Positions 5,840 through 26,121 of a DNA stretch of 64,000 bases are shown piece by piece. The stretch lies in the NCBI GenBank assembly GCA_965240325.2, contig OZ251228.1:2170001-2234000 (forward strand), written 5' to 3'. Every line of letters begins with the position of its first letter. The stretch's first letter is position 1. Source of the stretch: Rebecca billardiae RCC1528. Taxonomy: Eukaryota; Protista; Haptophyta. Below the pieces are notes generated by a model. It was not told where the DNA came from. It saw nothing but the letters and a program-made list of their open reading frames with translations, and did not search any database. Both the position numbers and the translations under genes were made by a program.

Positions 5840-7366
5840 TCACGGGAAGGAGGCGTCGAGCGAGGAGGGCGGCACCTCGAGGCCCACGCCCTGCACGCCC
5901 GAGGGCAGCGTGTACCGCAGCGTCGGCGTCGCGCGCAGCGCGTGCGCGAACGCGAGCGCAAACAGCGCCGGCTCGGCGCGCAGCCCGTCGCACTCGCCCA
6001 TCTCGAGCTGCGAGATGTGCGGCGCGCGCTGCACGATCGTGTACAGGCCCGCGGCCGAGAGCGCGGTGCAGCCCTCGAGCAGCAGCGTGCGCAGCGCGGG
6101 CAGCGCGCCCGTGGCCGCCAGGCTCGCGCGCGCGTTCCACCGGATGTCCAGCGCCTCGAGCCGCTCCGCGTCGTGCAGCCGCACCGCCGCCAGCCCCTCA
6201 AACACAAACGGGTCCTGGTGCACGTCGAGCGAGACGAGCCGCGGGCAGCGCGTCTCGAGGCGGCACGCGTGGTTGAGCAGCAGCGCGGAGAGGTTGAGCG
6301 TGCGCAGCTCGGCGTGCGCGAGCTCGAGCACCGCCGCGCCGCGGTCGGAGTACGCGCCCGCGCACGTGAGCGCGCGCAGCCGGGGCAGCGCGGCGCACGC
6401 GTCGAGCGCCACGCCCAGTGGCATGCCCGTGGGCAGCGACAGGTGGACGAGGCGCGCGTGCGCCGCGGAGGCGAGGAGCGGCCGGACCTCGGGCTCGCCG
6501 AGCGCGAAGCACCCCGCGCAGTCGAGCGACTCGATCGCCGGCGGCAGCGCGTCGAGCTCGCCGAGGTCGGTGTCTGACCACGACACGTCGAGCGCGCGCA
6601 TCGCCGGGCAGCGCGGCAGCAGCCAGCGCGCGCCCGCGCGCGAGAGCCCGTCCATGTGGCAGAGCTGCAGCTCTCGGAGCGCCTCGGAGAGGGGCTCGGG
6701 GGGCACGTCGTCCTCGGCCGGGGCATCCTCCGCGCCCTGCGCCTCCGCACCCTCCGCCTGCGTCACGGCGGCCGCCGCTGCGGCCGGCGCGTCCTCGGCG
6801 CGCGCGTCCGCGGTCGCGGGCGTGAGCGCGACCTCGTTCTCGGCGGTGGCGCTGAGGAGGGCGGGCGGTGGCGCGAGCGCGCTGCCCGAGCACTGGCGCA
6901 GCGCGAGCGCGCGCAGCCCCGCGCACCGACGCACGAGGTGCACCACCAGCCCGAGCAGCGCGTCCGAGGGGTCCTGCCCCGGCGCGCGCTCGTACCCGGC
7001 GGCCGGCGCGCCGCTCAGCCGCACGGAGCTCACAGACAAGGCGCGCACGCGCGGGGTGAGCGCGAGGAGGCGCTCGAGATCGAGAAAGTCGAGCTCAGAC
7101 TCGCCATCAGCGCACACGAGGGACACGACCGCCTCGGCGGTCACGGCAGGTGACGGGTCGTCCGTGCGCGAGCTCAGGCACGCTGACACGCCGCCGCCCG
7201 CCGCCGCGTCGATGGCGACGTGTGTGACCGTTGCCCAGCACGCACGTGCGGCCGACCGCCAGGAAGAGCAGACCAACGACGCGGCACCCCATGCGCGGGG
7301 CCCCGCCCCAGCGATCACGTGGACCAGCACGTCGTGGGGCAAGGCGGGCGGGACGCCCCCCTCCAT
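5840..7366 (-). CDS. F-box/LRR (FBXL-like) protein
   Basis: N-terminal F-box ALPHDVLVHVI...ASLVCSSWRSAA followed by LRRs (LRELQLCHM, MRALDVSWS, LRTLNLS, LRTLLLEGC). Confidence 0.8.
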   Translation of the reverse strand: MEGGVPPALPHDVLVHVIAGAGPRAWGAASLVCSSWRSAARACWATVTHVAIDAAAGGGVSACLSSRTDDPSPAVTAEAVVSLVCADGESELDFLDLERLLALTPRVRALSVSSVRLSGAPAAGYERAPGQDPSDALLGLVVHLVRRCAGLRALALRQCSGSALAPPPALLSATAENEVALTPATADARAEDAPAAAAAAVTQAEGAEAQGAEDAPAEDDVPPEPLSEALRELQLCHMDGLSRAGARWLLPRCPAMRALDVSWSDTDLGELDALPPAIESLDCAGCFALGEPEVRPLLASAAHARLVHLSLPTGMPLGVALDACAALPRLRALTCAGAYSDRGAAVLELAHAELRTLNLSALLLNHACRLETRCPRLVSLDVHQDPFVFEGLAAVRLHDAERLEALDIRWNARASLAATGALPALRTLLLEGCTALSAAGLYTIVQRAPHISQLEMGECDGLRAEPALFALAFAHALRATPTLRYTLPSGVQGVGLEVPPSSLDASFP

Positions 7367-9438: not shown

Positions 9439-10719
9439 CTACGGCGAGCCGCGGGCTCTGGGCCTGGCCTTGGGGCTGCCAGCGGCAGGGGTCCCGGGGC
9501 TGCGTGGACCATGGCGCGAGCCGGCCGCCGGGCTGTGCCGCGTGCCGCTCTGACGTGGCCCGCGTTGCGGACTGCTCTGATCGGCGCTGCTTGCGCTGGC
9601 AACGCCGCGGCCAGCGCTGCTGCCACCACGCCCGCGTCGACCGCGAGGATGCGACTGCGCCGGTGGTGACTGCTGCGCGTCGTGCCCCACCCGCCCGCGG
9701 CCCCGCCCGCCGCGGCCGCGGCCCCGCTCGCTGTGGCCTGCAGATGCGGCGTGTGGCTGCGCGCCGGCTGAGCCGGCCGCGACGGGCAGCTTCGCCACGG
9801 CCGGGGTACCCACTGGTTCTCGCCAGGCGGCGAGGAACGGGCTGAGCGCGATGACGACCACCGAGACGTTGTCTTCGCACATGACGCTCGCGAGCGCGCG
9901 CTGCACCAGCCCCGCCGCGACCTGGTCGAGCCCTGAGGGCTGGCCGCGCGCGCGGCGGAAGAGCTTGTGCGCGCACTCGACCGCCTCCTCCGGCGACAGC
10001 ACGTCCCACAGCCCGTCGCACGCGATGATGATGAACTCGTCCGTGTCCTGCACCTCGAAGCGCCGGACGTCAGGCACCGCACTCACCAGGTCCGGCTTGT
10101 ACTCCACGTCGCCGAAGCCACGCGAGACGCTGAGGTCGCCCATCAGCCGCTCGATGCCGGCGACGATTCTCACAAACCCGCCCGCGCGCTGAATGCGCTC
10201 GAGCTCGGACGGGTCTCCCGGCTTGTGGTCCACGGTGAGCGGCAGCGCAACGCCTGCGCGGCTGAGTACCGCTCGCGAGTCGCCGAGGTTCGCAGCGTAC
10301 AGCGCGCGCCCGAGCAGAATGACGGAGCATGCAGTGGAGCCATCCTCCCAGTCGGCGCGGGGCGGAGCGTGCGCGCGCGCGGCAATCTCGGCCTCGGTCC
10401 GTTCGAACGCGCCGACAATGGCGTCAGTGACAAGGTCGCCGTCTTCGAGCCCGTTCGCCCCAAGAGGGTACAGCTGCTTGGCCAGCGCGACGTAGAGCGT
10501 GCTCGCGGCAACCTTGGCGGCACGCACGCCACCATGGCCATCAAAGACGGCATAGAATGCGCACGGCGGCAGCCCGTCGGGCTTCTTGCACACGTGCGCG
10601 GCGGCGGACCATAAGGACTCGGCCGTGACGTGGCGGTCCTCCATTGACGGGCGCCGCCCCTGCGCGCACGCCGCGGCCGACGCCACCGGCCACGGCGAGC
10701 CAGCAGGCTGCACGGCCAT
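9439..10719 (-). CDS. Protein phosphatase 2C with RG/RGG-rich C-terminal tail
   Basis: QGRRPSMEDRH, VFDGHGG, DGSTA, ANLGDSRAVL, DHKP, LSVSRGFGD, IIACDGLWDV, EDNVSVVVI. Confidence 0.95.
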   Translation of the reverse strand: MAVQPAGSPWPVASAAACAQGRRPSMEDRHVTAESLWSAAAHVCKKPDGLPPCAFYAVFDGHGGVRAAKVAASTLYVALAKQLYPLGANGLEDGDLVTDAIVGAFERTEAEIAARAHAPPRADWEDGSTACSVILLGRALYAANLGDSRAVLSRAGVALPLTVDHKPGDPSELERIQRAGGFVRIVAGIERLMGDLSVSRGFGDVEYKPDLVSAVPDVRRFEVQDTDEFIIIACDGLWDVLSPEEAVECAHKLFRRARGQPSGLDQVAAGLVQRALASVMCEDNVSVVVIALSPFLAAWREPVGTPAVAKLPVAAGSAGAQPHAASAGHSERGRGRGGRGRGRVGHDAQQSPPAQSHPRGRRGRGGSSAGRGVASASSADQSSPQRGPRQSGTRHSPAAGSRHGPRSPGTPAAGSPKARPRARGSP

Positions 10720-10919
10720 TTCAACTGGCTCTCTGCTCCGCCTGGACGGCTGTGCTGCGGTGGTCAGCTCGGTCCTTGGGACGAACAGCTTTATTTACCT
10801 TTATCTTTTCGAGTCGTTCGTTTTCAGTTGGTGTTGGTGGGCCCGCCGAGCCGCCGCACGATGGCGGTTTGAGCGGAGGCGCCACTCTTGATCACAAGGG
10901 GGTGGAGCGTGGGCTCCCG

Positions 10920-13001
10920 ATGGCCGCCGCCACGAAGCCAGCGGCCAAGACGCCGTGGCTCCACGCGTGGCGTGACCCTGTGGCTGACCTCAAGGCCTAC
11001 TCGCCGTGCATCCGGCTGGTGGACTTGAATGGTGCGCGCGCGAGCGCCGGCCGCGCAACGCGCTTCGCCGAGCCGGCCACATGACCGTTGCGCGCGGCCG
11101 TCCGCACCGTGCGCGCGACGGCGCGCGCGCGCAGGCGACGGCGAGTACAAGCTGATCGTTGCCGACGCGGCGCGCCGCCTCAAGGTGTACCGCAACACCT
11201 CGCTCATCTCGGAGAACGTGCTGCTCGACCAGCCGGTCGCGCTGTGCGTCACGTACAACGAGGCGACCAAGCCGCGCGTGCCGTGCGTCTCGGTCGCGGC
11301 CGGCCCGCACGTGTTCATCTACCGCAGGTTACGGCCGTACTTCAAGTTCACCGTGCCACCGACGCCGCTCGCCGCGGCGGAGGCCGACGTGTGGACGCGG
11401 CTGAGCAGCGGGCACGCGGACATTGGCGGCGCCGTCGAGCAGCTCGTGACGATGCGCGACGCGGGCACCGCGCTCTCGACGCGCTCGGTCGACCTGATCA
11501 ACACGGAGGACGCGGCCGAGCGGCGCGCGCTGGTCGAGACGTGGAAGGGCGCGCCGCTCAACCAGCAGACCGTGATCACCTGCATGGAGGTCGTCAAGAA
11601 GAACATGGACGAAGACGACGCGCTCTCGCAGCTCGTGATCGGCACCGAGTCGGGCGCGGTGCTCATCCTCGACGTGTCCGGCGTGACGATCCTCAACCGC
11701 TTCGTGCTGCCCGCCGCGCCGGTCTTCCTCGCGGTGACCGGGCTGTACGACGTCGAGTACCGCGTCGTCTGCGCCTGCCGCAACGGCTCGGTGTACACGA
11801 TCAAGAACGGCGAGCTCACCGGGATGGTGATCGAGCTCGAGGCGCAGCCGTGCGGGCTGTGCCGGCTCGACAAGTCGATCGTGGTCGCGTGCATGGGCAA
11901 CGTGGTGCACTCGTACCACATCAAGGGGAAGAAGAGCTTCTCGCTGTACATGCCCGCCCCCGTCGCCGCGGTCGAGGTGCTCCAGCTCACGCGCATGCGC
12001 ACGCTGCGCGCGCTGCTCGTCTCGCTGCACAACGGCGAGGTGCGCGTGTACAACGACAAGGACCTGGTGCACACGCTCGCCACCGACGACCCGGTGGTCG
12101 GCATGCGGTTTGGGTCGTACGGCCGCGAGGAGGGCGCGCTCGCGATGGTGGGCAAGGCGGGCACGCTGCTCATCAAGATGCTCCAGCGCTCCGCCTCGCT
12201 CGACTCGGCGAGCGCGCCGCCCGGACCCCCGCCCGAGCAGGACATCCCGCTCGCCATCCCGAAGAAGACCAAGCTGTACGTCGAGCAGACGCAGCGCGAG
12301 CGCGACCAGGCGACGGAGATGCACCGCATCTTCCAGCGCGACCTGTGCAAGCTGCGGCTGAGCACGGCGCGCGCGTACGTCAAGGTGCTCACCGACGGGC
12401 AGGTGCGCGCCGCGCGCCGCGCCACCTCGCGCGCGGTCCCGCGACGGCGCGCGCGGCCCCCCGGGCCTCGCTCACCGCCGCGCGCGCGCCGCGCCGCCCG
12501 GCCCGCGCGCAGGGCCCCCAGTCGTACACGCTCGGCGAGTCCATCCGGCTGACCGCGCAGGTGCAGGGCCTCGGCCCCCTCTTCAAGCTCAAGCTCAACC
12601 TGCAGAACATGGGCACCAAGCCCATCCAGGACCTCGAGATGACCTTTGCCGCCAACCCGATGCTGTACAAGCTCAAGGCGCGCGTGCTGCATGTACGCAC
12701 GCAGCGCAGCGCGGCGCGGCCGCGCGCACGCGCGGCGGCGCGAACCTAGGCGCGCACGCGAGATCGAGCGAGAAGAGGGCGCGCGCGCGCGCGCTGACGC
12801 ACGCCGCGCGCCGTGCCGCGCGCGCAGGTGGGCATGCTCCTGCCGAGCGTCACGTACCGCTGCGAGTGCGAGCTGCAGAGCGTCGACGAGGGCGGCGCGG
12901 CCGACAGCGTGCGCGTGTTCGTGTGCAACCGCACGAGCAAGCTGCCCATCATCTCGGCGGTGGTGGCGATGCCGATCAGCGAAGCAGTCATGCCGGACTG
13001 A
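10920..13001 (+). CDS. BBS1: Bardet-Biedl syndrome 1 protein (BBSome); exons 10920-11031, 11135-12402, 12513-12692, 12828-13001
   Basis: WLHAWRDPVA..DLNGDGEYKLIVAD, YRRLRPYFKFTVP, FGSYGREEG, IPKKTKLYVEQTQRERD, VQGLGPLFKL; three GT-AG introns restore the frame. Confidence 0.95.
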
Positions 13002-13623: not shown

Positions 13624-13954
13624 CATACTGCGACTAACGACACGCCCCGTAAGCCCGCCGCGCCCGGCTCGTCTGAGACGGTCCAGTCACAGACAGACGC
13701 ACACTCATCACACAGTGACTGCTTGAGTTGTCTTGAGTGAGAGCCACTCGTAACTGTGTACATCGTTAGTATCGTAGTCATGATAGAGTCTACGACTGCT
13801 GCTACGGTGAGTGCTACTGCTTCATGTAACTAGCAGCTTCAGATATAGATATATATATATACCTATATATATATATCTATATATATATAGATATAGATAT
13901 ATATCGCCGCCGCTATAACGCCAGTACATATAGCAGTCGTTATAACGATTAAGG

Positions 13955-15376
13955 TCACCGCCCCCGCCACGGCCACAGCCAACTACCACCAGAAAAGAGC
14001 GCAGCGAGGCCTGATAATGTGGTACTCTGCTGCGCGGTACCAGGGCTTCCCACGGCCGAGGCTGAGCTCCGTGGGCTGTTGATGGGCGCGCGCTGGGCCA
14101 TGCGCATGGGTGCGACGGCAGCTGCCTTCGATGCCGTTGTCGCTTTCGCTGGCTTCGCCACCTTGGCCGCGGGAGCCTCAGCTGGCGTCGCCGCAGCGTC
14201 AGCAGCAGCTCCATCGGCTGCGCGGCGGCAGCCAGCGCGTGCAGAGGCATTGGAGGACTTGCGGTACAGTGCCGCCCACGCCGCGTCCATGTTGCTCCAG
14301 CTGCGCGTGCCAAGCATCGCCTCGCGCACCGCCGCGACCGTCGCCGAGAGCGTCGACGGTGGCGTGCCGAGGAACAGGCGCGAGCGGATGAGAAGCAGCA
14401 TGTCTACGAGGACGGACGGCGGGGCTGCGCTCGGGCGCGGCACGAGCGAGGAAGGGAGGAGCACGTTGAAGCGCTGCTTGAGCCGCGCGATGGTCGGCGA
14501 GCTCGCCGGGAAGTCGTGCGGGTCGTGCGCGAGCACGAGAGGCGTGCTGGGCGGCAGCGCCGCGCGCTCCAGCCACCCCTGCACGTACTCGATGCTCAGC
14601 TGGCACACGTCTGCCGGGCGCCAGATGGGCTCGCGCGTGGGATAGATGAGGTGCGAGACGTCGGCGCTGCCGCACGCCTCGCCGAGCGGGAGGACGAGCC
14701 GCTCGACGCACGCCTTCTCCACCCAGCGCAGGTGCGCGCCCACGTAAGCGGCGCGACCGCCCTGCAGGTGGCGCTCGATGAAGCTGTCCACGGCTGCGCG
14801 CAGCGCGCGCGACGGGCGCAGCAGCAGCTGCGCGCTCAGCGTGCCGAAGAAGAGCTCGGAGGCGGGCGTGCGCGCGTAGAACAGCCGCTTCGTCTCGAGG
14901 CGCGCGATTCGTCGCCCCTCCTTTTCGAGCCGCGCCTCATCGCTCGCGTCGGCGACGCAGAGCCAGCTGTCGAAAGCGCCGCGATAGTCGAGGTGCTCAC
15001 CAAAGTGATGGGTGAAGGCCCTGGGTAGGAGCATGCGCGCGTCCTCGCCCGCGTCGGCTCGTGTGGCCACGAAGGCGGCAAGGCTGCTCAACTCGCTGAG
15101 GAAGTTGTTCAGCCGCCCGTACGCCTCGCGAAAAGTATAGTATGTCGCGTTGCGGCCGCTGCAGCTCACGACCGCCGCTCCGATGGCCGGCGGCTCACCG
15201 AACGGCTGATACCATCCGCGCACGAGCCGCGGCGGATCCCACGCGAAAGGGTGCTCGGGGACCTCAAGCGTCGGCACCACGCCGGGCCTGGCGTCGATGC
15301 TGCGGCTGTCGAGCGCCGTGCCAAGCATCAAGCTCGCCATGGTGACAAGCGCGGCGCGATGAGCAGCGGCAGCCAT
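13955..15376 (-). CDS. GDP-fucose O-fucosyltransferase-like glycosyltransferase (copy 1)
   Basis: Hydrophobic N-terminus MAAAAHRAALVTMASLMLG; motifs YGRLNNFL, YVGAHLRW, VDMLLLIRSRLFLGTPPSTLS resemble GT-B fucosyltransferases (POFUT/FUT8/NodZ-type). Confidence 0.75.
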   Translation of the reverse strand: MAAAAHRAALVTMASLMLGTALDSRSIDARPGVVPTLEVPEHPFAWDPPRLVRGWYQPFGEPPAIGAAVVSCSGRNATYYTFREAYGRLNNFLSELSSLAAFVATRADAGEDARMLLPRAFTHHFGEHLDYRGAFDSWLCVADASDEARLEKEGRRIARLETKRLFYARTPASELFFGTLSAQLLLRPSRALRAAVDSFIERHLQGGRAAYVGAHLRWVEKACVERLVLPLGEACGSADVSHLIYPTREPIWRPADVCQLSIEYVQGWLERAALPPSTPLVLAHDPHDFPASSPTIARLKQRFNVLLPSSLVPRPSAAPPSVLVDMLLLIRSRLFLGTPPSTLSATVAAVREAMLGTRSWSNMDAAWAALYRKSSNASARAGCRRAADGAAADAAATPAEAPAAKVAKPAKATTASKAAAVAPMRMAQRAPINSPRSSASAVGSPGTAQQSTTLSGLAALFSGGSWLWPWRGR

Positions 15377-15500
15377 GCTGCCTCGCGGACATATCATTAC
15401 AAGGAATCCCAGGCGGCACACCGAAGCCGCAACTGGAGGGCTGCCGTCGTCGATCGGCGACGCGCGCGCCAGCCGGTGCTCCGCGCACAAGCTGGCCGGC

Positions 15501-16961
15501 ATGGTCGACGTGAGGAACCCCAAGTGTGATCACGCGGGCTGCACCACGCGGCCTAACTTCGGCATGCCGGGCGACGCGCGCGCCAGCCGATGCGCCACGC
15601 ACAAGCTGGCCGGGATGGTCGACATGAAGAGCCCCAAGTGTGATCACGCGGGCTGCACCACGCGGCCTTTGTTCGGCATGCCGGGCGACTCGCGCGCCAG
15701 CCGGTGCGCTACGCACAAGCTGGCCGGCATGGTCGACGTGAAGAGCCGCAAGTGTGATCACACGGGCTGCACCAAGGGGCCTTCGTACGGCATGCCGGGC
15801 GACGCGCGCGCCAGCCGGTGCGCCACGCACAAGCTGGCCGGCATGGTCAACGTGGTGAGCCCCACGTGCGATCACACCGGCTGCACCAAGGTGCCTTCTT
15901 TCGGCATGCCGGGCGACGCGCGCGCCAGCCGGTGCGCCACGCACAAGCTGGCCGGCATGGTCGACTTGGTGCACCCCAAGTGTGATCACACCGGCTGCAC
16001 CACACGGCCTACCTTCGGCATGCCGGGCAACGCGCGCGCCAGCCGGTGCGCCACGCACAAGCTGGCCGGCATGGTCGATGTGAAGAGCCCCAAGTGTGAT
16101 CACACCGGCTGCACCACACGGCCTACCTTCGGCATGGCGGGCAACGCGCGCGCCAGCCGGTGTGCTACGCACAAGCTGGCCGGCATGGTCGACGTGAGGA
16201 GCCCCAAGTGTGGTCACACCGGCTGCACCAAGGGGCCTTCATTCGGCATGCCGGGCGACGCGCGCGGCAGCCGGTGCGCCACGCACAAGCTGGCCGGCAC
16301 GGTCGACTTGGTGCACCCCAAGTGTGATCACACCGGCTGTACCACACGGCCTACCTTCGGCATGCCGGGCGACGCACGCGCAAGCCGGTGCGCTACGCAC
16401 AAGCTGTCCGGCATGGTCGGCTTGGTGCACCCCAAGTGTCATCACGCGGGCTGCACCAAGGGGCCTGCGTTCGGCATGCCGGGTGACACGCGCGCCAGCC
16501 GGTGCGCTGAACACAAGCTGGCCGGCATGGTTAACACTCGGCTTGCCGTCCCCAAGCGCAGGCTGGAGCATGGCACCGGCGACCAGGGCACGCGCGCAGC
16601 GAAGCGACAGCACAAAACCACAAGCTGCGTTGCCGCTGTTTTGGACGCCGCGCCGCAGCTTTCCCCACCGCCGCCGCTGGTCGCTGTCAGCATCGTCCGC
16701 TGGCGCTCGCCAGATGGCACGATCCGTTCGGTTGACGACGGGGTGGTCAATGATGGTGCCTGGGCCCTGGACGAGCGGCACCTGTCCGCCTTGCCCGGCA
16801 ACGCAGGTGGCGACGCAGTCCGGGCTGCCCATGGCAGCTACGACCAGGGTCTACCAGCACTACCGTCATCATCGATGGCGGCTGGAGCAGCACCGCGGCA
16901 GCAACCACAGGACATACCTGTGGTGATGGCCAGGAGGGTGGTCCGCGACGGTGCAGGCTGA
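15501..16961 (+). CDS. EsV-1-7 cysteine-rich repeat protein (copy 1, 9 repeats; upstream in-frame ATG at 15375)
   Basis: 38-aa repeat GMVDVKSPKCDHTGCTKGPSFGMPGDARASRCATHKLA x9 (15501-16526), then basic PKRRLE..AAKRQHK and a unique C-terminus. Confidence 0.85.
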   Translation: MVDVRNPKCDHAGCTTRPNFGMPGDARASRCATHKLAGMVDMKSPKCDHAGCTTRPLFGMPGDSRASRCATHKLAGMVDVKSRKCDHTGCTKGPSYGMPGDARASRCATHKLAGMVNVVSPTCDHTGCTKVPSFGMPGDARASRCATHKLAGMVDLVHPKCDHTGCTTRPTFGMPGNARASRCATHKLAGMVDVKSPKCDHTGCTTRPTFGMAGNARASRCATHKLAGMVDVRSPKCGHTGCTKGPSFGMPGDARGSRCATHKLAGTVDLVHPKCDHTGCTTRPTFGMPGDARASRCATHKLSGMVGLVHPKCHHAGCTKGPAFGMPGDTRASRCAEHKLAGMVNTRLAVPKRRLEHGTGDQGTRAAKRQHKTTSCVAAVLDAAPQLSPPPPLVAVSIVRWRSPDGTIRSVDDGVVNDGAWALDERHLSALPGNAGGDAVRAAHGSYDQGLPALPSSSMAAGAAPRQQPQDIPVVMARRVVRDGAG

Positions 16962-17456
16962 TGAAGCCGTAAAGCGTGGCTCGTCGTGATGATCTCCCAA
17001 CGATCATCACGACGAGCTTTCGTTCGAGCGAGCGCTGGCATCGGGCCGCCGATTCCGAGACGCCACCGGGCACGGCAGAAGTTCTTCACCGCGCTCGACT
17101 TCACGCCCCTGTTCCGCTCATGTCGACCGGCGCCCCTCCACTCACGGCCGGCAGGGGCTGGCCCACCAAGCTGCTCAAGACCTTCATCGTCACTAACTCT
17201 TACTGGGACCTGCCAGCCGCACATCGGCACGCTCTGCAAGCAGCTGGCCTTCCCGGAGGCGTGCGCGATGGCGCAGAAGCACGGGCCCAACACGGTGCAT
17301 CTCGACGTGGACTTACTGCTCGAGCACGGGCCTGACCGCTGACGCGGTAGTCGCGCTGCTCGCGTGCAGCACTGCCTCCAGCCCGGGCGGCTGGCGCTTC
17401 CCCCCGTGCCACCTACGGCACCACCTCTCCGACGCCTGACGCCTGTGCAGAGGCTC

Positions 17457-17965
17457 GGGCTCTGGCTTCGGTTGACCCCTGCCAGAGACGGGCACTGTGA
17501 GCTCTTTCATGAAGTCACTCGTGAAAACCGCACAGGAGGACCTCAATGGATGCTGCCTAGATGATGACTTCAGAGCGATTATTGGGCCAACAAGCGCAGG
17601 TTTCCTCTATAGTTAAAGTTATTTAGCAGTAGTTCAGACTCTATTTTACTATGTATTTACCCATTTCAGACTCCGGTCAGAATGTCAGAACACGGTCCGG
17701 GAGCGATCCGGATGCACCCGTAGCTATTGGAAATGTGTCACCGGACTGGTTAAATAGCTAGGAGAAATAGTAGAGTCTGAAGTAGTCACAAAGTGAGAGT
17801 TTCACACCCTCCAGGGCACTTGTTGGCCATTCATAGCAACTCTACTTGGGGCCCTGTGGGACACTTCGGGCGTATTCATTCGGCCGCGCAGGAATGCGAA
17901 GATCATTTTCGGTACTGCCCGGTTTCTATGACCGGACTGGCAGGGGTCCACCGGAGCCAGAGCCC
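17457..17965. mobile_element. 509-bp MITE with ~29-bp TIRs (unit 1)
   Basis: GGGCTCTGGCTTCGGTTGACCCCTGCCAG ... CTGGCAGGGGTCCACCGGAGCCAGAGCCC; absent from unit 3. Confidence 0.85.
17633..17781. mobile_element. 149-bp mini-MITE nested in the 509-bp MITE (second copy 21744-21892)
   Basis: TTCAGACTCTA...TAGAGTCTGAA termini with longer imperfect inverted repeat; GTAG on both flanks. Confidence 0.75.
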
Positions 17966-18061
17966 AGATCCGATATGTGCTGATGATTCGGATGCTGCGC
18001 GTGACAAAGTGCGCAATTATTCCGCAATAAAATTTACTGTAACAAAGCGCCTCGCCAACTA

Positions 18062-18063
<2 letters not shown>

Positions 18064-18129
<66 letters not shown>
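18064..18129. repeat. (GA)n microsatellite between units 1 and 2
   Basis: Seen directly. Confidence 0.95.
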
Positions 18130-18132
<3 letters not shown>

Positions 18133-18177
18133 CCGCCGCTATAACGCCACATATAGCAGTCGTTATAACGATTAAGG

Positions 18178-19596
18178 TCACCGCCCCCGCCACGGCCACA
18201 GCCAACTACCACCAGAAAAGAGCGCAGCGAGGCCTGATGTGGTACTCTGCTGCGCGGTACCAGGGCTTCCCACGGCCGAGGCTGAGCTCCGTGGGCTGTT
18301 GATGGGCGCGCGCTGAGCCATGCGCATGGGTGCGACGGCAGCTGCCTTCGATGCCGTTGTCGCTTTTGCTGGCTTCGCCACCTTGGCCGCTGGAGCCTCA
18401 GCTGGCGTCGCCGCAGCGTCAGCAGCAGCTCCATCGGCTGCGCGGCGGCAGCCAGCGCGTGCAGAGGCATTGGAGGACTTGCGGTACAGTGCCGCCCACG
18501 CCGCGTCCATGTTGCTCCAGCTGCGCGTGCCAAGCATCGCCTCGCGCACCGCCGCGACCGTCGCCGAGAGCGTCGACGGCGGCGTGCCGAGGAACAGGCG
18601 CGAGCGGATGAGAAGCAGCATGTCTACGAGGACGGACGGCGGGGCTGCGCTCGGGCGCGGCACGAGCGAGGAAGGGAGGAGCACGTTGAAGCGCTGCTTG
18701 AGCCGCGCGATGGTCGGCGAGCTCGCCGGGAAGTCGTGCGGGTCGTGCGCGAGCACGAGAGGCGTGCTGGGCGGCAGCGCCGCGCGCTCCAGCCACCCCT
18801 GCACGTACTCGGTGCTCAGCTGGCACACGTCTGCCGGGCGCCAGATGGGCTCGCGCGTGGGATAGATGAGGTGCGAGACGTCGGCGCTGCCGCACGCCTC
18901 GCCGAGCGGGAGGACGAGCCGCTCGACGCACGCCTTCTCCACCCAGCGCAGGTGCGCGCCCACGTAAGCGGCGCGACCGCCCTGCAGGTGGCGCTCGATG
19001 AAGCTGTCCACGGCTGCGCGCAGCGCGCGCGACGGGCGCAGCAGCAGCTGCGCGCTCAGCGTGCCGAAGAAGAGCTCGGAGGCGGGCGTGCGCGCGTAGA
19101 ACAGCCGCTTCGTCTCGAGGCGCGCGATTCGTCGCCCCTCCCTTTCGAGCCGCGCCTCATCGCTCGCGTCGGCGACGCAGAGCCAGCTGTCGAAAGCGCC
19201 GCGATAGTCGAGGTGCTCACCAAAGTGATGGGTGAAGGCCCTGGGCAGGAGCATGCGCGCGTCCTCGCCCGCGTCGGCTCGTGTGGCCACGAAGGCGGCA
19301 AGGCTGCTCAACTCGCTGAGGAAGTTGTTCAGCCGCCCGTACGCCTCGCGAAAAGTATAGTATGTCGCGTTGCGGCCGCTGCAGCTCACGACCGCCGCTC
19401 CGATGGCCGGCGGCTCACCGAACGGCTGATACCATCCGCGCACGAGCCGCGGCGGATCCCACGCGAAAGGGTGCTCGGGGACCTCAAGCGTCGGCACCAC
19501 GCCGGGCCTGGCGTCGATGCTGCGGCTGTCGAGCGCCGTGCCAAGCATCAAGCTCGCCATGGTGACAAGCGCGGCGCGATGAGCAGCGGCAGCCAT
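18178..19596 (-). CDS. O-fucosyltransferase-like glycosyltransferase (copy 2)
   Basis: Near-identical to copy 1. Confidence 0.75.
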   Translation of the reverse strand: MAAAAHRAALVTMASLMLGTALDSRSIDARPGVVPTLEVPEHPFAWDPPRLVRGWYQPFGEPPAIGAAVVSCSGRNATYYTFREAYGRLNNFLSELSSLAAFVATRADAGEDARMLLPRAFTHHFGEHLDYRGAFDSWLCVADASDEARLEREGRRIARLETKRLFYARTPASELFFGTLSAQLLLRPSRALRAAVDSFIERHLQGGRAAYVGAHLRWVEKACVERLVLPLGEACGSADVSHLIYPTREPIWRPADVCQLSTEYVQGWLERAALPPSTPLVLAHDPHDFPASSPTIARLKQRFNVLLPSSLVPRPSAAPPSVLVDMLLLIRSRLFLGTPPSTLSATVAAVREAMLGTRSWSNMDAAWAALYRKSSNASARAGCRRAADGAAADAAATPAEAPAAKVAKPAKATTASKAAAVAPMRMAQRAPINSPRSSASAVGSPGTAQQSTTSGLAALFSGGSWLWPWRGR

Positions 19597-19725
19597 GCTG
19601 CCTCGCGGACATAAAGTAATCCTCAATCCGCCCAGGCGCGCGGCACACCGAAGCCGCAACTGGGGCTGCCGTCGTCGATCGGCGACGCGCGCGCCAGCCG
19701 GTGCTCCGCGCACAAGCTGGCCGGG

Positions 19726-21072
19726 ATGGTCGACATGAAGAGCCCCAAGTGTGATCACGCGGGCTGCACCACGCGGCCTTTGTTCGGCATGCCGGGCGAC
19801 TCGCGCGCCAGCCGGTGCGCTACGCACAAGCTGGCCGGCATGGTCGACGTGAAGAGCCGCAAGTGTGATCACACGGGCTGCACCAAGGGGCCTTCGTACG
19901 GCATGCCGGGCGACGCGCGCGCCAGCCGGTGCGCCACGCACAAGCTGGCCGGCATGGTCAACGTGGTGAGCCCCACGTGTGATCACACCGGCTGCACCAA
20001 GGTGCCTTCTTTCGGCATGCCGGGCGACGCGCGCGCCAGCCGGTGCGCCACGCACAAGCTGGCCGGCATGGTCGACTTGGTGCACCCCAAGTGTGATCAC
20101 ACCGGCTGCACCACACGGCCTACCTTCGGCATGCCGGGCAACGTGCGCGCCAGCCGGTGCGCCACGCACAAGCTGGCCGGCATGGTCGATGTGAAGAGCC
20201 CCAAGTGTGATCACACCGGCTGCACCACACGGCCTACCTTCGGCATGGCGGGCAACGCGCGCGCCAGCCGGTGTGCTACGCACAAGCTGGCCGGCATGGT
20301 CGACGTGAGGAGCCCCAAGTGTGGTCACACCGGCTGCACCAAGGGGCCTTCATTCGGCATGCCGGGCGACGCGCGCGGCAGCCGGTGCGCCACGCACAAG
20401 CTGGCCGGCACGGTCGACTTGGTGCACCCCAAGTGTGATCACACCGGCTGTACCACACGGCCTACCTTCGGCATGCCGGGCGACGCACGCGCAAGCCGGT
20501 GCGCTACGCACAAGCTGTCCGGCATGGTCGGCTTGGTGCACCCCAAGTGTCATCACGCGGGCTGCACCAAGGGGCCTGCGTTCGGCATGCCGGGTGACAC
20601 GCGCGCCAGCCGGTGCGCTGAACACAAGCTGGCCGGCATGGTTAACACTCGGCTTGCCGTCCCCAAGCGCAGGCTGGAGCATGGCACCGGCGACCAGGGC
20701 ACGCGCGCAGCGAAGCGACAGCACAAAACCACAAGCTGCGTTGCCGCTGTTTTGGACGCCGCGCCGCAGCTTTCCCCACCGCCGCCGCTGGTCGCTGTCA
20801 GCATTGTCCGCTGGCGCTCGCCAGATGGCACGATCCGTTCGGTTGACGACGGGGTGGTCAATGATGGTGCCTGGGCCCTGGACGAGCGGCACCTGTCCGC
20901 CTTGCCCGGCAACGCAGGTGACGACGCAGTCCGGGCTGCCCATGGCAGCTACGACCAGGGTCTACCAGCACTACCGTCATCATCGATGGCGGCTGGAGCA
21001 GCACCGCGGCAGCAACCACAGGACATACCTGTGGTGATGGCCAGGAGGGTGGTCCGCGACGGTGCAGGCTGA
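19726..21072 (+). CDS. EsV-1-7 repeat protein (copy 2, 8 repeats)
   Basis: 114-bp repeats 19726-20637; same C-terminus. Confidence 0.85.
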   Translation: MVDMKSPKCDHAGCTTRPLFGMPGDSRASRCATHKLAGMVDVKSRKCDHTGCTKGPSYGMPGDARASRCATHKLAGMVNVVSPTCDHTGCTKVPSFGMPGDARASRCATHKLAGMVDLVHPKCDHTGCTTRPTFGMPGNVRASRCATHKLAGMVDVKSPKCDHTGCTTRPTFGMAGNARASRCATHKLAGMVDVRSPKCGHTGCTKGPSFGMPGDARGSRCATHKLAGTVDLVHPKCDHTGCTTRPTFGMPGDARASRCATHKLSGMVGLVHPKCHHAGCTKGPAFGMPGDTRASRCAEHKLAGMVNTRLAVPKRRLEHGTGDQGTRAAKRQHKTTSCVAAVLDAAPQLSPPPPLVAVSIVRWRSPDGTIRSVDDGVVNDGAWALDERHLSALPGNAGDDAVRAAHGSYDQGLPALPSSSMAAGAAPRQQPQDIPVVMARRVVRDGAG

Positions 21073-21567
21073 TGAAGCCGTGAAGCGTGGCTCGTCGTGA
21101 TGATCTCCCAACGATCATCACGACGAGCTTTCGTTCGAGCGAGCGCTGGCATCGGGCCGCCGATTCCGAGACGCCACCGGGCACGGCAGAAGTTCTTCAC
21201 CGCGCTCGACTTCACGCCCCTGTTCCGCTCATGTCGACCGGCGCCCCTCCACTCACGGCCGGCAGGGGCTGGCCCACCAAGCTGCTCAAGACCTTCATCG
21301 TCACTAACTCTTACTGGGACCTGCCAGCCGCACATCGGCACGCTCTGCAAGCAGCTGGCCTTCCCGGAGGCGTGCGCGATGGCGCAGAAGCACGGGCCCA
21401 ACACGGTGCATCTCGACGTGGACTTACTGCTCGAGCACGGGCCTGACCGCTGACGCGGTAGTCGCGCTGCTCGCGTGCAGCACTGCCTCCAGCCCGGGCG
21501 GCTGGCGCTTCCCCCCGTGCCACCTACGGCACCACCTCTCCGACGCCTGACGCCTGTGCAGAGGCTC

Positions 21568-22076
21568 GGGCTCTGGCTTCGGTTGACCCCTGCCAGAGAC
21601 GGGCACTGTGAGCTCTTTCATGAAGTCACTCGTGAAAACCGCACAGGAGGACCTCAATGGATGCTGCCTAGATGATGACTTCAGAGCGATTATTGGGCCA
21701 ACAAGCGCAGGTTTCCTCTATAGTTAAAGTTATTTAGCAGTAGTTCAGACTCTATTTTACTATGTATTTACCCATTTCAGACTCCGGTCAGAATGTCAGA
21801 ACACGGTCCGGGAGCGATCCGGATGCACCCGTAGCTATTGGAAATGTGTCACCGGACTGGTTAAATAGCTAGGAGAAATAGTAGAGTCTGAAGTAGTCAC
21901 AAAGTGAGAGTTTCACACCCTCCAGGGCACTTGTTGGCCATTCATAGCAACTCTACTTGGGGCCCTGTGGGACACTTCGGGCGTATTCATTCGGCCGCGC
22001 AGGAATGCGAAGATCATTTTCGGTACTGCCCGGTTTCTATGACCGGACTGGCAGGGGTCCACCGGAGCCAGAGCCC
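21568..22076. mobile_element. 509-bp MITE (unit 2)
   Basis: Same as 17457-17965. Confidence 0.85.
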
Positions 22077-22172
22077 AGATCCGATATGTGCTGATGATTC
22101 GGATGCTGCGCGTGACAAAGTGCGCAATTATTCCGCAATAAAATTTACTGTAACAAAGCGCCTCGCCAACTA

Positions 22173-22174
<2 letters not shown>

Positions 22175-22260
<86 letters not shown>
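22175..22260. repeat. (GA)n microsatellite between units 2 and 3
   Basis: Seen directly. Confidence 0.95.
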
Positions 22261-22263
<3 letters not shown>

Positions 22264-22308
22264 CCGCCGCTATAACGCCACATATAGCAGTCGTTATAAC
22301 GATTAAGG

Positions 22309-23727
22309 TCACCGCCCCCGCCACGGCCACAGCCAACTACCACCAGAAAAGAGCGCAGCGAGGCCTGATGTGGTACTCTGCTGCGCGGTACCAGGGCTTC
22401 CCACGGCCGAGGCTGAGCTCCGTGGGCTGTTGATGGGCGCGCGCTGAGCCATGCGCATGGGTGCGACGGCAGCTGCCTTCGATGCCGTTGTCGCTTTCGC
22501 TGGCTTCGCCACCTTGGCCGCTGGAGCCTCAGCTGGCGTCGCCGCAGCGTCAGCAGCAGCTCCATCGGCTGCGCGGCGGCAGCCAGCGCGTGCAGAGGCA
22601 TTGGAGGACTTGCGGTACAGTGCCGCCCACGCCGCGTCCATGTTGCTCCAGCTGCGCGTGCCAAGCATCGCCTCGCGCACCGCCGCGACCGTCGCCGAGA
22701 GCGTCGACGGCGGCGTGCCGAGGAACAGGCGCGAGCGGATGAGAAGCAGCATGTCTACGAGGACGGACGGCGGGGCTGCGCTCGGGCGCGGCACGAGCGA
22801 GGAAGGGAGGAGCACGTTGAAGCGCTGCTTGAGCCGCGCGATGGTCGGCGAGCTCGCCGGGAAGTCGTGCGGGTCGTGCGCGAGCACGAGAGGCGTGCTG
22901 GGCGGCAGCGCCGCGCGCTCCAGCCACCCCTGCACGTACTCGGTGCTCAGCTGGCACACGTCTGCCGGGCGCCAGATGGGCTCGCGCGTGGGATAGATGA
23001 GGTGCGAGACGTCGGCGCTGCCGCACGCCTCGCCGAGCGGGAGGACGAGCCGCTCGACGCACGCCTTCTCCACCCAGCGCAGGTGCGCGCCCACGTAAGC
23101 GGCGCGACCGCCCTGCAGGTGGCGCTCGATGAAGCTGTCCACGGCTGCGCGCAGCGCGCGCGACGGGCGCAGCAGCAGCTGCGCGCTCAGCGTGCCGAAG
23201 AAGAGCTCGGAGGCGGGCGTGCGCGCGTAGAACAGCCGCTTCGTCTCGAGGCGCACGATTCGTCGCCCCTCCCTTTCGAGCCGCGCCTCATCGCTCGCGT
23301 CGGCGACGCAGAGCCAGCTGTCGAAAGCGCCGCGATAGTCGAGGTGCTCACCAAAGTGATGGGTGAAGGCCCTGGGCAGGAGCATGCGCGCGTCCTCGCC
23401 CGCGTCGGCTCGTGTGGCCACGAAGGCGGCAAGGCTGCTCAACTCGCTGAGGAAGTTGTTCAGCCGCCCGTACGCCTCGCGAAAAGTATAGTATGTCGCG
23501 TTGCGGCCGCTGCAGCTCACGACCGCCGCTCCGATGGCCGGCGGCTCACCGAACGGCTGATACCATCCGCGCACGAGCCGCGGCGGATCCCACGCGAAAG
23601 GGTGCTCGGGGACCTCAAGCGTCGGCACCACGCCGGGCCTGGCGTCGATGCTGCGGCTGTCGAGCGCCGTGCCAAGCATCAAGCTCGCCATGGTGACAAG
23701 CGCGGCGCGATGAGCAGCGGCAGCCAT
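22309..23727 (-). CDS. O-fucosyltransferase-like glycosyltransferase (copy 3)
   Basis: Near-identical to copies 1 and 2. Confidence 0.75.
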   Translation of the reverse strand: MAAAAHRAALVTMASLMLGTALDSRSIDARPGVVPTLEVPEHPFAWDPPRLVRGWYQPFGEPPAIGAAVVSCSGRNATYYTFREAYGRLNNFLSELSSLAAFVATRADAGEDARMLLPRAFTHHFGEHLDYRGAFDSWLCVADASDEARLEREGRRIVRLETKRLFYARTPASELFFGTLSAQLLLRPSRALRAAVDSFIERHLQGGRAAYVGAHLRWVEKACVERLVLPLGEACGSADVSHLIYPTREPIWRPADVCQLSTEYVQGWLERAALPPSTPLVLAHDPHDFPASSPTIARLKQRFNVLLPSSLVPRPSAAPPSVLVDMLLLIRSRLFLGTPPSTLSATVAAVREAMLGTRSWSNMDAAWAALYRKSSNASARAGCRRAADGAAADAAATPAEAPAAKVAKPAKATTASKAAAVAPMRMAQRAPINSPRSSASAVGSPGTAQQSTTSGLAALFSGGSWLWPWRGR

Positions 23728-23855
23728 GCTGCCTCGCGGACATAAAGTAATCCTCAATCCCAGGCGCGCGGCACACCGAAGCCGCAACTGGAGGGCTGCC
23801 GTCGTCGATCGGCGACGCGCGCGCCAGCCGGTGCTCCGCGCACAAGCTGGCCGGG

Positions 23856-25430
23856 ATGGTCGACATGAAGAGCCCCAAGTGTGATCACGCGGGCTGCACC
23901 ACGCGGCCTTTGTTCGGCATGCCGGGCGACTCGCGCGCCAGCCGGTGCGCTACGCACAAGCTGGCCGGCATGGTCGACGTGAAGAGCCGCAAGTGTGATC
24001 ACACCGGCTGCACCAAGGTGCCTGCGTTCGGCATGCCGGGTGACTCGCGCGCCAGCCGGTGTGCTGAGCACAAGCTGGCCGGCATGGTCGACGCGAGGCA
24101 CCCCAAGTGTGATCACGCGGGCTGCACCACGCAGCCTTCGTTCGGCATGCCGGGCGACGCGCGCGGCAGCCGGTGCGCCACGCACAAGCTGGCCGGCATG
24201 GTCGACTTGGTGCACCGCACGTGCGATCACGCGGGCTGCACCAAGCAGCCTTCGTTCGGCATGCCGGGCGACGCGCGCGCCAGCCGGTGCGCTACGCACA
24301 AGCTGGCCGGCATGGTCGACATGAAGAACCCCAAGTGTGATCACACGGGCTGCACCAAGGGGCCTTCGTACGGCATGCCGGGCGACGCGCGCGCCAGCCG
24401 GTGCGCCACGCACAAGCTGGCCGGCATGGTCAACGTGGTGAGCCCCAAGTGTGGTCACACCGGCTGCACCAAGGGGCCTTCATTCGGCATGCCGGGCGAC
24501 GCGCGCGGCAGCCGGTGCGCTACGCACAAGCTGGCCGGAATGGTCGACGTGAAGAGCCCCAAGTGTGGTCACACCGGCTGCACCAAGGGGCCTTCATTCG
24601 GCATGCCGGGCGACGCGCGCGGCAGCCGGTGCGCTACGCACAAGCTGGCCGGAATGGTCGACGTGAAGAGCCTCAAGTGTGATCACACCGGCTGCACCAA
24701 GCGGCCTTCGTTCGGCATGCCGGGTGACGCGCGCGCCAGCCGGTGCGGTACGCACAAGCTGGCCGGTATGGTCGACGTGAAGAACCCCAAGTGTGACCAC
24801 GCGGGCTGCACCAAGGGGCCTTCGTTCGGCATGCCGGGTGACGCGCGCGCCAGCCGGTGCGGTACGCACAAGCTGGCCGGCATGGTCGACATGAAGAACC
24901 CCAAGTGTGATCACGCGGGCTGCACCAAGGGGCCTTCATTCGGCATGCCGGGTGACACGCGCGTCAGCCGGTGCGCTGAACACAAGCTGGCCGGCATGGT
25001 TAACACTCGGCTTGCCGTCCCCAAGCGCAGGCTGGAGCATGGCACCGGCGACCAGGGCACGCGCGCAGCGAAGCGACAGCACAAAACCACAAGCTGCGTT
25101 GCCGCTGTTTTGGACGCCGCGCCGCAGCTTTCCCCACCGCCGCCGCTGGTCGCTGTCAGCATCGTCCGCTGGCGCTCGCCAGATGGCACGATCCGTTCGG
25201 TTGACGACGGGGTGGTCAATGATGGTGCCTGGGCCCTGGACGAGCGGCACCTGTCCGCCTTGCCCGGCAACGCAGGTGACGACGCAGTCCGGGCTGCCCA
25301 TGGCAGCTACGACCAGGGTCTACCAGCACTACCGTCATCATCGATGGCGGCTGGAGCAGCACCGCGGCAGCAACCACAGGACATACCTGTGGTGATGGCC
25401 AGGAGGGTGGTCCGCGACGGTGCAGGCTGA
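23856..25430 (+). CDS. EsV-1-7 repeat protein (copy 3, 10 repeats in a different order)
   Basis: 114-bp repeats 23856-24995; same C-terminus. Confidence 0.85.
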   Translation: MVDMKSPKCDHAGCTTRPLFGMPGDSRASRCATHKLAGMVDVKSRKCDHTGCTKVPAFGMPGDSRASRCAEHKLAGMVDARHPKCDHAGCTTQPSFGMPGDARGSRCATHKLAGMVDLVHRTCDHAGCTKQPSFGMPGDARASRCATHKLAGMVDMKNPKCDHTGCTKGPSYGMPGDARASRCATHKLAGMVNVVSPKCGHTGCTKGPSFGMPGDARGSRCATHKLAGMVDVKSPKCGHTGCTKGPSFGMPGDARGSRCATHKLAGMVDVKSLKCDHTGCTKRPSFGMPGDARASRCGTHKLAGMVDVKNPKCDHAGCTKGPSFGMPGDARASRCGTHKLAGMVDMKNPKCDHAGCTKGPSFGMPGDTRVSRCAEHKLAGMVNTRLAVPKRRLEHGTGDQGTRAAKRQHKTTSCVAAVLDAAPQLSPPPPLVAVSIVRWRSPDGTIRSVDDGVVNDGAWALDERHLSALPGNAGDDAVRAAHGSYDQGLPALPSSSMAAGAAPRQQPQDIPVVMARRVVRDGAG

Positions 25431-26027
25431 TGAAGCCGTAAAGCGTGGCTCGTCGTGATGATCTCCCAACGATCATCACGACGAGCTTTCGTTCGAGCGA
25501 GCGCTGGCATCGGGCCGCCGATTCCGAGACGCCACCGGGCACGGCAGAAGTTCTTCACCGCGCTCGACTTCACGCCCCTGTTCCGCTCATGTCGACCGGC
25601 GCCCCTCCACTCACGGCCGGCAGGGGCTGGCCCACCAAGCTGCTCAAGACCTTCATCGTCACTAACTCTTACTGGGACCTGCCAGCCGCACATCGGCACG
25701 CTCTGCAAGCAGCTGGCCTTCCCGGAGGCGTGCGCGATGGCGCAGAAGCACGGGCCCAACACGGTGCATCTCGACGTGGACTTACTGCTCGAGCACGGGC
25801 CTGACCCCTGACGCGGTAGTCGCGCTGCTCGCGTGCAGCACTGCCTCCAGCCCGGGCGGCTGGCGCTTCCCCCCGTGCCACCTACGGCACCACCTCTCCG
25901 ACGCCTGACGCCTGTGCAGAGGCTTGGATCCGATTTGTGCTGATGATTCGGATATGCTGCGCGCAAAGTCGTGCGCAATTCCGCCCGGCAATAAAATTTT
26001 CTATAACAAAGCGCCTCGCCAACTAAG

Positions 26028-26045
26028 GAGAGTGAGAGAGAATGA

Positions 26046-26121
<76 letters not shown>
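26028..26121. repeat. (GA)n microsatellite closing the array
   Basis: Seen directly. Confidence 0.95.

Follow-up and report, generated by a model that had tools for sequence, protein, structure and literature searches.

The region 13905-26027 of the window (the whole stretch of 64,000 nucleotides that was analysed) is likely a young tandem segmental duplication, in which a 3.8-4.2-kb block holding two unrelated host genes, adjacent by chance, is present in three copies. Self-BLAST and TRF divide the region into three tandem units, U1, U2 and U3, each followed by a (GA)n tract; these tracts are of unequal length, TRF counting 33, 43 and about 46 repeats. The layout is as follows.

13843..13904: (AT)31 microsatellite at the left array edge, preceding U1 (TRF, sequence read)
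13905..18063: unit 1 (U1), A-type, 4159 bp (self-BLAST, pairwise identities)
18064..18129: (GA)33 microsatellite, U1/U2 junction (TRF)
18131..22174: unit 2 (U2), recombinant, with a left B-type part (like U3) and a right A-type part (like U1)
22175..22260: (GA)43 microsatellite, U2/U3 junction (TRF)
22262..26027: unit 3 (U3), B-type, 3766 bp, without MITE (self-BLAST)
26028..26121: (GA)n microsatellite at the right array edge (TRF)

Each unit encodes a fucosyltransferase-like enzyme on the minus strand and an EsV-1-7 array protein on the plus strand, and all six ORFs are open.

15376 (ATG) to 13955 (stop), minus strand: fucosyltransferase-like gene, copy 1, 473 aa, 99% identical to copy 3
19596 (ATG) to 18178, minus strand: fucosyltransferase-like gene, copy 2, 472 aa
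23727 (ATG) to 22309, minus strand: fucosyltransferase-like gene, copy 3, 472 aa
15501..16961, plus strand: EsV-1-7 gene, copy 1, 9 full repeats and a 140-aa tail (mechanical ORF from 15375)
19726..21072, plus strand: EsV-1-7 gene, copy 2, 8 repeats corresponding to copy-1 repeats 2-9 with one substitution
23856..25430, plus strand: EsV-1-7 gene, copy 3, 10 repeats in a different order

The divergent start codons lie 125-129 bp apart in all three units (129 bp in U3; 125 bp in U1 when counted from the linker Met at 15501). The first-pass annotation of this DNA had described an amplified block of three microsatellite-bounded tandem units, each with the enzyme gene on the minus strand, an EsV-1-7 partner on the plus strand and the two ATGs close together. 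All of this is confirmed by self-BLAST, TRF, ORF location and the Pfam matches reported below. In U1 the mechanical first ATG of the EsV gene, at 15375, overlaps the enzyme ATG within a CATG; the family-typical linker Met at 15501 is probably the start, and the ATG at 15375 is probably not used. A 716-aa minus-strand ORF in U2 was considered as a longer form of the enzyme and rejected, as it reads through the EsV array in antisense and has a GC3 of 0.58. A small inversion was likewise considered for the divergent segment 15394-15412, which lies immediately upstream of the enzyme start codon in U1, but the segment does not fit a clean inversion. Genome-wide, an 84-bp stretch of unique intergenic DNA occurs in full only in U1, U2 and U3; a single partial match lies beside the array of a paralogue.

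Outside the repeat arrays the units are 98.8-99.9% identical in pairwise comparison, non-coding DNA included, and the three enzyme copies are mutually 99-100% identical. The first-pass annotation had contrasted a nearly invariant enzyme and EsV tail with a changing repeat array. The pattern stands, but its reading as constraint does not: because the non-coding DNA is equally constant, the constancy of the enzyme and the EsV tail reflects the recency of the duplication. Within the enzyme, 3/7 substitutions between the A and B types are non-synonymous, a weak hint of constraint from few sites. Selection for dosage could account for the presence of three intact copies with every ORF open.

The relationship between the units is recorded in the following features.

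17458..17964: MITE-like dispersed repeat in U1, about 507 bp, with terminal inverted repeats of about 28 bp
19709..19874: interval containing the exchange point, inside EsV repeats 1-2 of U2
21569..22075: MITE-like insertion in U2; the enclosing 608-bp stretch is 100% identical to that of U1

In the left half, almost all informative sites unite U2 with U3 and distinguish both from U1. U2 equals U3 up to 19874, and from 19875 rightwards it equals U1 shifted by 114 bp; to the right of this position its repeats show 0-1 mismatch each to U1 and 4-55 to U3. The MITE-like repeat (at least 40 copies, 76-89% identity, with self-matching terminal inverted repeats) is common to U1 and U2, while U3 has an empty site at 25924/25925. 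A single right-half site, 16810, is discordant, with U2 matching U3 and not U1, which calls for a subsequent mutation or a short conversion tract. As judged from these sites, U2 joins a left part from one outer copy to a right part from the other, with a single switch point, and the arrays of U1 and U2 differ by a single repeat, which an unequal crossover removed.

The sites show the following order of events. The locus at first had two diverged copies, an A-type (now U1) and a B-type (now U3) about 1% apart, and the MITE entered the A-type copy. One out-of-register crossover inside the EsV array then gave rise to a middle copy with a B-type left and an A-type right part, one repeat shorter, this single event taking the locus from two copies to three; U2 later picked up some changes of its own. 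The (AT)n and (GA)n microsatellites on either side are the probable break sites of the first duplication. Between U1 and U3 the arrays have diverged far more than the flanks, and this larger A/B difference probably arose from intra-array slippage and from exchange with paralogous arrays rather than from selection tied to the enzyme; repeat 9 of copy 3 is identical at 113/114 positions to a repeat of a paralogue located 75 kb away. The process resembles classical unequal crossing-over (non-allelic homologous recombination) in that U2 is a hybrid of the outer copies and in that an exchange inside an internal tandem repeat changed the repeat number by one. Nothing distinguishes it from this known mechanism except the probable microsatellite breakpoints of the first duplication.

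The copy number of three comes from one assembly. An exact B-left/A-right unit is also what a chimeric read path over a two-copy array could give, in which case the real locus would hold two copies, or a single one, and U2 would be a mis-join. Such an artefact is very unlikely, since several variants are found in U2 alone: the bases 18367 T, 20805 T and 21082 G, one Ala-to-Val replacement in the array, the insertion of CCG at 19628-19630 and the loss of a GA near 19662. In addition, the (GA)n tracts are unequal, and the CCG insertion is present in independent short-read unitigs. These Logan unitigs, L011 and L012, contain the B-type left half together with the U2-specific insertion and are silent on copy count. 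The contiguity of the assembly itself, 72 Mb in 41 contigs, points to long reads and speaks further against a mis-join. The same two unitigs were considered as evidence of transcription and set aside, as they end at repeat or branch points and RNA and DNA are indistinguishable in them.

The EsV partner is unambiguous at the level of its domain. PF19114 (EsV_1_7_cys) matches the three ORFs with E-values of 1e-112 to 1e-141 and scores of 366-461 bits over 8-10 stretches per protein, against a gathering score of 25 bits. Repeats were counted in the structural phase C-x4-C-x16-C-x2-H, the spacing that reportedly defines the EsV-1-7 repeat, and this pattern is kept in 27/27 units (C9, C14, C31 and H34, putative zinc ligands). 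In its tandem C-x4-C-x16-C-x2-H units and in scores far over the cut-off the protein resembles the family to which Ectocarpus IMMEDIATE UPRIGHT belongs. It differs from it in that the units are strictly 38 aa (114 bp) long with about 90% DNA identity, in the 140-aa C-terminal tail common to all members here, and in that the duplicated block also holds an unrelated enzyme gene. Reading of the tail sequence reveals a bipartite NLS-like motif, KRR...KRQHK, and no signal peptide; because of this motif the product is probably nuclear. Brown algae have a much enlarged EsV-1-7 family whose genes are often arrayed in tandem (bioRxiv 10.1101/2024.02.19.579948). The family is also greatly expanded in the present genome, the host here being a pavlovophyte haptophyte: a first-look search with PF19114 returned 2267 candidates genome-wide, the EsV tail has matches at 122 places, and the array gene family comprises well over 100 members sharing the 140-aa tail.

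The assignment of the enzyme is less direct. Against Pfam O-FucT (PF10250) it scores 17.5 bits (E 0.0034), below the gathering score of 31.5 bits. The Pfam domains foreseen in the first-pass annotation are thus recovered for EsV-1-7 and not for O-FucT, and it is at the level of fold and family profile that its fucosyltransferase-like label is upheld. Only three close copies exist in the 72-Mb genome, those of the array, and the wider family consists of seven dispersed genes, 6/7 of which give weak PF10250 matches; a distant relative, P0095, clears the cut-off with 35.6 bits. A word-index protein search retrieved no match to the enzyme but itself, and no protein at least 50% identical to it was found outside this genome among 1.84 billion representatives. 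An exhaustive profile search did find relatives, and the branch has several hundred of them in eukaryotic and metagenomic data. A profile built from 48 sequences of the family matches C. elegans CePOFUT1 (3zy2) with an E-value of 3e-11, mouse and human POFUT1 with about 1e-5 to 1e-4, and POFUT2 with 1e-4.

The AF2 model of the enzyme (pLDDT 76.9, core above 90) gives a consistent picture. Among the Foldseek matches listed with E-values of 0.001 or less, all are fucosyltransferases. VIA Z-scores range from 16.2 to 12.6 across POFUT2, POFUT1, FUT8, NodZ and AtFUT1, the next class, that of non-fucosyl GT-B enzymes, reaching 8.4 and thus clearly set apart. With POFUT2 (GT68) and POFUT1 (GT65) the modelled GT-B fold yields Z-scores of 16.2 and 15.9, respectively, over about 250 aligned residues. 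In the family profile alignment, the HLR and G-N-x-x-S-T-x-S motifs of the array enzyme align with the HLR and STFS motifs of POFUT1, so that HLR and STxS are retained, and across the family H215, R217, S341 and R351 vary little or not at all. The Arg of the HLR motif is the catalytic residue in POFUT1. As in POFUT1/2, the N-terminus carries a signal/anchor helix, modelled at residues 2-25. The enzyme differs from POFUT1/2 in its identity of only 12-18%, in its sub-threshold PF10250 score, in an N-terminal W-D-P-P...W-W motif specific to its family, and in a disordered Ala/Pro-rich tail of about 70 aa. Model and profiles together identify it as a GT-B fucosyltransferase relative distant from POFUT1/2; it is predicted to be a secretory-pathway, fucosyltransferase-like protein and a divergent member of a seven-gene pavlovophyte family.

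The first-pass annotation had further proposed a dedicated module of a variable recogniser and a constant enzyme. In its full form, a shared promoter would co-express a glycan-modifying enzyme and a variable recognition protein, the pair being amplified because dosage or diversity is useful, e.g., in antiviral defence or self-recognition. The start codons 125-129 bp apart in every unit, the six intact ORFs, the coding-like GC3 of both genes and the divergence of the U1 and U3 arrays much beyond their flanks are all in keeping with it, and a putative bidirectional promoter in the roughly 127-bp upstream region, co-regulating enzyme and EsV gene, is possible simply because the genes are so close. 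The module is nevertheless unlikely. The conservation of the flanks stems from recent duplication and not from constraint, and the crossover itself accounts for the array difference between U1 and U2. Enzyme and EsV protein are probably active in separate compartments, since the sequences predict a signal/anchor helix in one and an NLS-like tail in the other. The linkage itself, moreover, is found nowhere else: no EsV repeats occur within 4-5 kb of the six enzyme paralogues or on the five contigs carrying three foreign enzyme homologues, the enzyme is absent beside the seven closest EsV paralogues examined, and at least 120 places in the genome have the EsV tail without this enzyme. Among the loci tested, a set that excludes Diacronema and Pavlovales sp. 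CCMP2436, the pairing appears unique to this locus, a result that the first-pass annotation had itself listed as refuting its proposal.

The adjacency of the two genes has parallels in the head-to-head, bidirectional-promoter pairs of compact eukaryotic genomes. Nearby, PP2C and BBS1 are arranged in this way at 310 bp, and 124 bp separate a close EsV paralogue from the NBAS-like gene that it faces head-to-head; a second close paralogue is likewise head-to-head with an ORF that is at least 1300 aa long and unrelated. The partners of these two paralogues were compared and are not related to each other. The enzyme/EsV arrangement differs from such pairs in that the partner of the EsV gene changes from locus to locus. 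Short head-to-head spacing with unrelated partners is also seen at other EsV genes and at other gene pairs of this genome.

The homology shared by the EsV family spans only 19681 to about 21552, the intergenic DNA and the enzyme lying outside. EsV genes might spread as transcript-sized units (a 45 bp leader plus the coding sequence, followed by some 0.3-0.5 kb of 3' flank), land some 125 bp head-to-head with the starts of unrelated host genes and use their promoters bidirectionally. The enzyme/EsV pair would then be a captured promoter that was later amplified, and the like spacing at two independent loci (125-129 bp here and 124 bp at the NBAS-like gene) would reflect a targeting or selection rule. 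We consider this improbable.

The other origin advanced in the first-pass annotation, a cargo block of viral or transposon descent that carried in both genes and was amplified by its own mechanism, is more improbable still and deserves hardly any credence. The name of the EsV-1-7 repeats comes from a phaeovirus gene, both genes are without introns, and a MITE lies inside 2/3 units. Viral co-option is also discussed in the brown-algal literature (PMC12993054). Against this, the ORFs scanned contain no viral hallmark or transposase domain, and the annotatable neighbours of the array (PP2C, BBS1, an amino-acid transporter, CrcB, DGAT and a diphthine-synthase-like gene) are ordinary cellular genes. 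The units are bounded by microsatellites, with no TIRs or LTRs at their edges in the junction sequences read, and the MITE is a later insertion, as the U3 site is empty. The overall GC of the block is host-like, and the GC3 of its genes (0.82-0.83, versus 0.84-0.95 in host genes) agrees with that of the host. The genes of the enzyme family are scattered through the host genome, and related proteins occur in other eukaryotes. Host genes in the neighbourhood, PP2C and BBS1 among them, usually have intron-free ORFs, and since such ORFs and short head-to-head spacing are both normal here, neither is a sign of viral origin.

As a two-gene system the array matters little, the evidence pointing to accidental neighbourhood and ordinary recombination. 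The locus illustrates that close head-to-head spacing and intron-free ORFs are the rule in this genome, and it defines a divergent, Pfam-subthreshold O-fucosyltransferase-like branch with seven members here. It also provides a clean, dated case of EsV-1-7 arrays gaining and losing repeats by out-of-register crossover and of their swapping repeats with paralogues tens of kb away. Both processes bear on how the huge EsV family diversifies in a haptophyte.

The amplified pair of fucosyltransferase-like enzyme and EsV-1-7 genes in the window most likely arose by ordinary tandem duplication, recently, in an event that caught two chance neighbours within a genome-wide EsV-1-7 expansion. The first-pass annotation accurately described three tandem units with divergent, open enzyme and EsV ORFs, as self-comparison, TRF and ORF analysis confirm. 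The count of three rests on the assembled sequence (72 Mb in 41 contigs, roughly 67% GC), in which the window is C11:2170001-2234000. The features of the array are as follows.

13905-18063: unit U1 (self-comparison, TRF)
18131-22174: unit U2 (self-comparison, TRF)
22262-26027: unit U3 (self-comparison, TRF)
Immediately before U1: (AT)31 microsatellite (TRF)
After each unit: a (GA)n tract, with 33 (U1), 43 (U2) and about 46 (U3) repeats (TRF)
17458-17964 (U1) and 21569-22075 (U2): MITE-like dispersed repeat, 507 bp

The enzyme ORF, on the minus strand, is open in all three units and encodes 472-473 amino acids from ATGs at 15376 (U1), 19596 (U2) and 23727 (U3). The plus-strand EsV-1-7 array ORF is likewise open in all three and matches Pfam PF19114 with E-values of 1e-112 to 1e-141. 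The arrays of U1, U2 and U3 comprise 9, 8 and 10 full 38-residue EsV units, respectively, in the structural phase C-x4-C-x16-C-x2-H, each array being followed by a C-terminal tail of 140 residues. Seven close EsV paralogues all display first a vestigial half-unit and then a Met within a ...LAG-M-VD... linker; by analogy, the likely EsV starts are 15501, 19726 and 23856. With these starts the divergent ATGs are 125-129 bp apart, in agreement with the ~125-130 bp noted in the first pass. A 716-residue ORF on the minus strand of U2 (18178-20328) was rejected as a spurious fusion of the enzyme frame with the open antisense of the EsV array, its GC3 of 0.58 indicating that it is not coding.

A constant enzyme next to a variable EsV array had been read in the first pass as a possible co-regulated unit, a functional module. 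The constancy of the enzyme and of the EsV tail is, however, equalled by that of non-coding DNA: all non-array sequence, non-coding stretches included, is 98.8-99.9% identical across the three units, so that the constancy of the coding parts reflects the youth of the copies. The difference in repeat number between U1 and U2 is in turn accounted for by one unequal crossover. At almost all left-half sites where U1 and U3 differ, U2 is identical to U3, while from position 19875 to the right it follows U1 with an offset of exactly one 114-bp repeat; from there on, each U2 repeat exhibits 0-1 mismatches with offset U1, as compared to 4-55 with U3. U1 and U2 are also 100% identical over a 608-bp stretch harboring the 507-bp insertion, of which the uninterrupted U3 site (25924/25925) is empty. 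This insertion is MITE-like, since it has dispersed copies (at least 40 scored, at 76-89% identity on many contigs, from a first look that gave 207 candidates) and inverted ends, its first roughly 28 bases matching the far end in reverse as terminal inverted repeats (GGGCTCTGGCT...).

The simplest history compatible with these comparisons would begin with two block copies, A (U1-like) and B (U3-like), about 1% diverged. The MITE would then have entered copy A, and a single out-of-register unequal crossover of B with A, inside EsV repeats 1-2 (19709-19874), would have produced the order A, B-left/A-right, B. Being out of register, this crossover would also have left U2 with one EsV repeat fewer than U1. 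Site 16810 is discordant with this history and needs a later change. The private changes that U2 has acquired since the crossover speak for its being a real copy.

The A and B arrays themselves are far more different than their flanks. Repeat 9 of U3 (24768-24881) is identical at 113 of 114 positions to a repeat of the closest EsV paralogue, located 75 kb away, as compared to at most 106 of 114 for any U1 repeat. This suggests that ectopic exchange among paralogous EsV arrays contributes to the A/B difference. To note, the most diverged A/B patch lies just upstream of the enzyme ATG (15394-15412 versus 19614-19639): these 20 bp accumulate 9 substitutions as well as indels, while the remaining unit sequence is about 99% identical.

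Nor did the pairing recur at any of the loci and contigs searched, an outcome that the first pass had itself named as counting against its reading. The three units hold the only close copies of the enzyme in the genome. No EsV repeats were detected within 4-5 kb of any of its six paralogues, with the window itself serving as the positive control, nor on five contigs bearing three foreign enzyme homologues; among 1.84 billion representatives, no relative outside this genome reaches 50% identity. The EsV gene, for its part, belongs to a crowd: a first look gave 2267 PF19114 candidates in the genome, and the 140-residue tail has 122 matches. Its homology to the closest paralogues begins at 19681, where a half-repeat leader of 45 bp precedes the ATG, takes in the CDS and ends in the 3' flank, about 330-480 bp beyond the stop; the enzyme and the other 84 bp of the intergenic DNA lie outside it. 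The shared block is transcript-sized (19681-21552, with counterparts in U1 and U3), which could reflect conserved UTRs or retroposition.

Close EsV paralogues have other partners. At positions 6066-6194 of its locus (C11:2265000-2274999), the closest one, whose tail is 94% identical, faces an unrelated NBAS-like ORF (at least 1269 residues) head-to-head; a second has upstream of it an ORF, likewise unrelated, that spans at least 1300 residues, and further ones are found close to genes for a histidine phosphatase, a PIP5K and a cyclin-like protein. The EsV and NBAS-like ATGs are 124 bp apart, nearly the spacing of the enzyme/EsV pair, which may be a coincidence or a rule for siting EsV genes. 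A promoter shared by the enzyme and EsV genes is possible. In this genome it is normal for divergent genes to lie close together and to have few introns, as illustrated at 9439-12552 by PP2C on the minus strand and BBS1 on the plus strand, both largely single open frames, head-to-head with ATGs 310 bp apart.

A virus- or TE-derived cargo block, the other origin proposed initially, is not borne out. Those neighbours that could be annotated are cellular genes: PP2C, BBS1, an amino-acid transporter, CrcB, DGAT, a diphthine-synthase-like methylase, a SAM methyltransferase and a VTT-domain protein; BBS1 is most similar to that of Pavlovales sp. CCMP2436 (78%), then Diacronema lutheri (77%), which places the host among the pavlovophyte haptophytes. 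The GC3 of the enzyme and EsV genes (0.82-0.83) is near that of host genes (0.84-0.95), and the unit edges are microsatellites, with no element termini seen in the junction sequence. The lack of introns is uninformative, because introns are largely missing from neighbouring host genes too.

The predicted compartments bear on the module as well. In the AlphaFold model the enzyme starts with a helix (residues 2-25) such as signal anchors typically have. At the start of the EsV tail, PKRR...(12 residues)...KRQHK resembles a bipartite NLS, and the EsV protein appears to have no signal peptide. The site of action would be the secretory pathway for the enzyme and the nucleus for the EsV protein; since these compartments differ, a recogniser directly aiming the enzyme is unlikely.

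The annotation of the enzyme as fucosyltransferase-like is sound, on evidence that goes beyond Pfam: against O-FucT the enzyme scores 17.5 bits, for a cut-off of 31.5. Its six paralogues (loci L004-L009, on contigs C29, C23, C1, C17, C7 and C11) share 27-34% identity with it; each consists of one open frame and encodes a hydrophobic helix at the N-terminus as well as a conserved W-D-P-P...W-W motif. Conserved cysteines are common to the seven members, six of which give weak O-FucT matches. An additional short fragment adjoins the C1 copy (L010). A profile of the seven retrieved 482 relatives among the 1.84 billion representatives; those looked up are for the most part metagenomic, with one choanoflagellate, and one relative passes the O-FucT cut-off. 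The AlphaFold model, built from 48 sequences, has a pLDDT of 76.9 (core above 90), and its top Foldseek matches are exclusively fucosyltransferases. VIA-align Z-scores are 16.2 for POFUT2, 15.9 for POFUT1, 14.8 for FUT8, 13.6 for NodZ and 13.1 for AtFUT1, the next GT-B class reaching 8.4. The family profile matches C. elegans POFUT1 (E-value 3e-11), with HLR and STxS aligned, and the Atlas language-model neighbours fall in O-FucT, FUT8 and XG_FTase clusters of haptophytes and green algae. The enzyme is accordingly accepted as a predicted fucosyltransferase-like protein of the GT65/68-related superfamily. It belongs to a seven-member, divergent O-fucosyltransferase-like family that scores under the Pfam threshold and to which several hundred uncharacterised metagenomic proteins are related.
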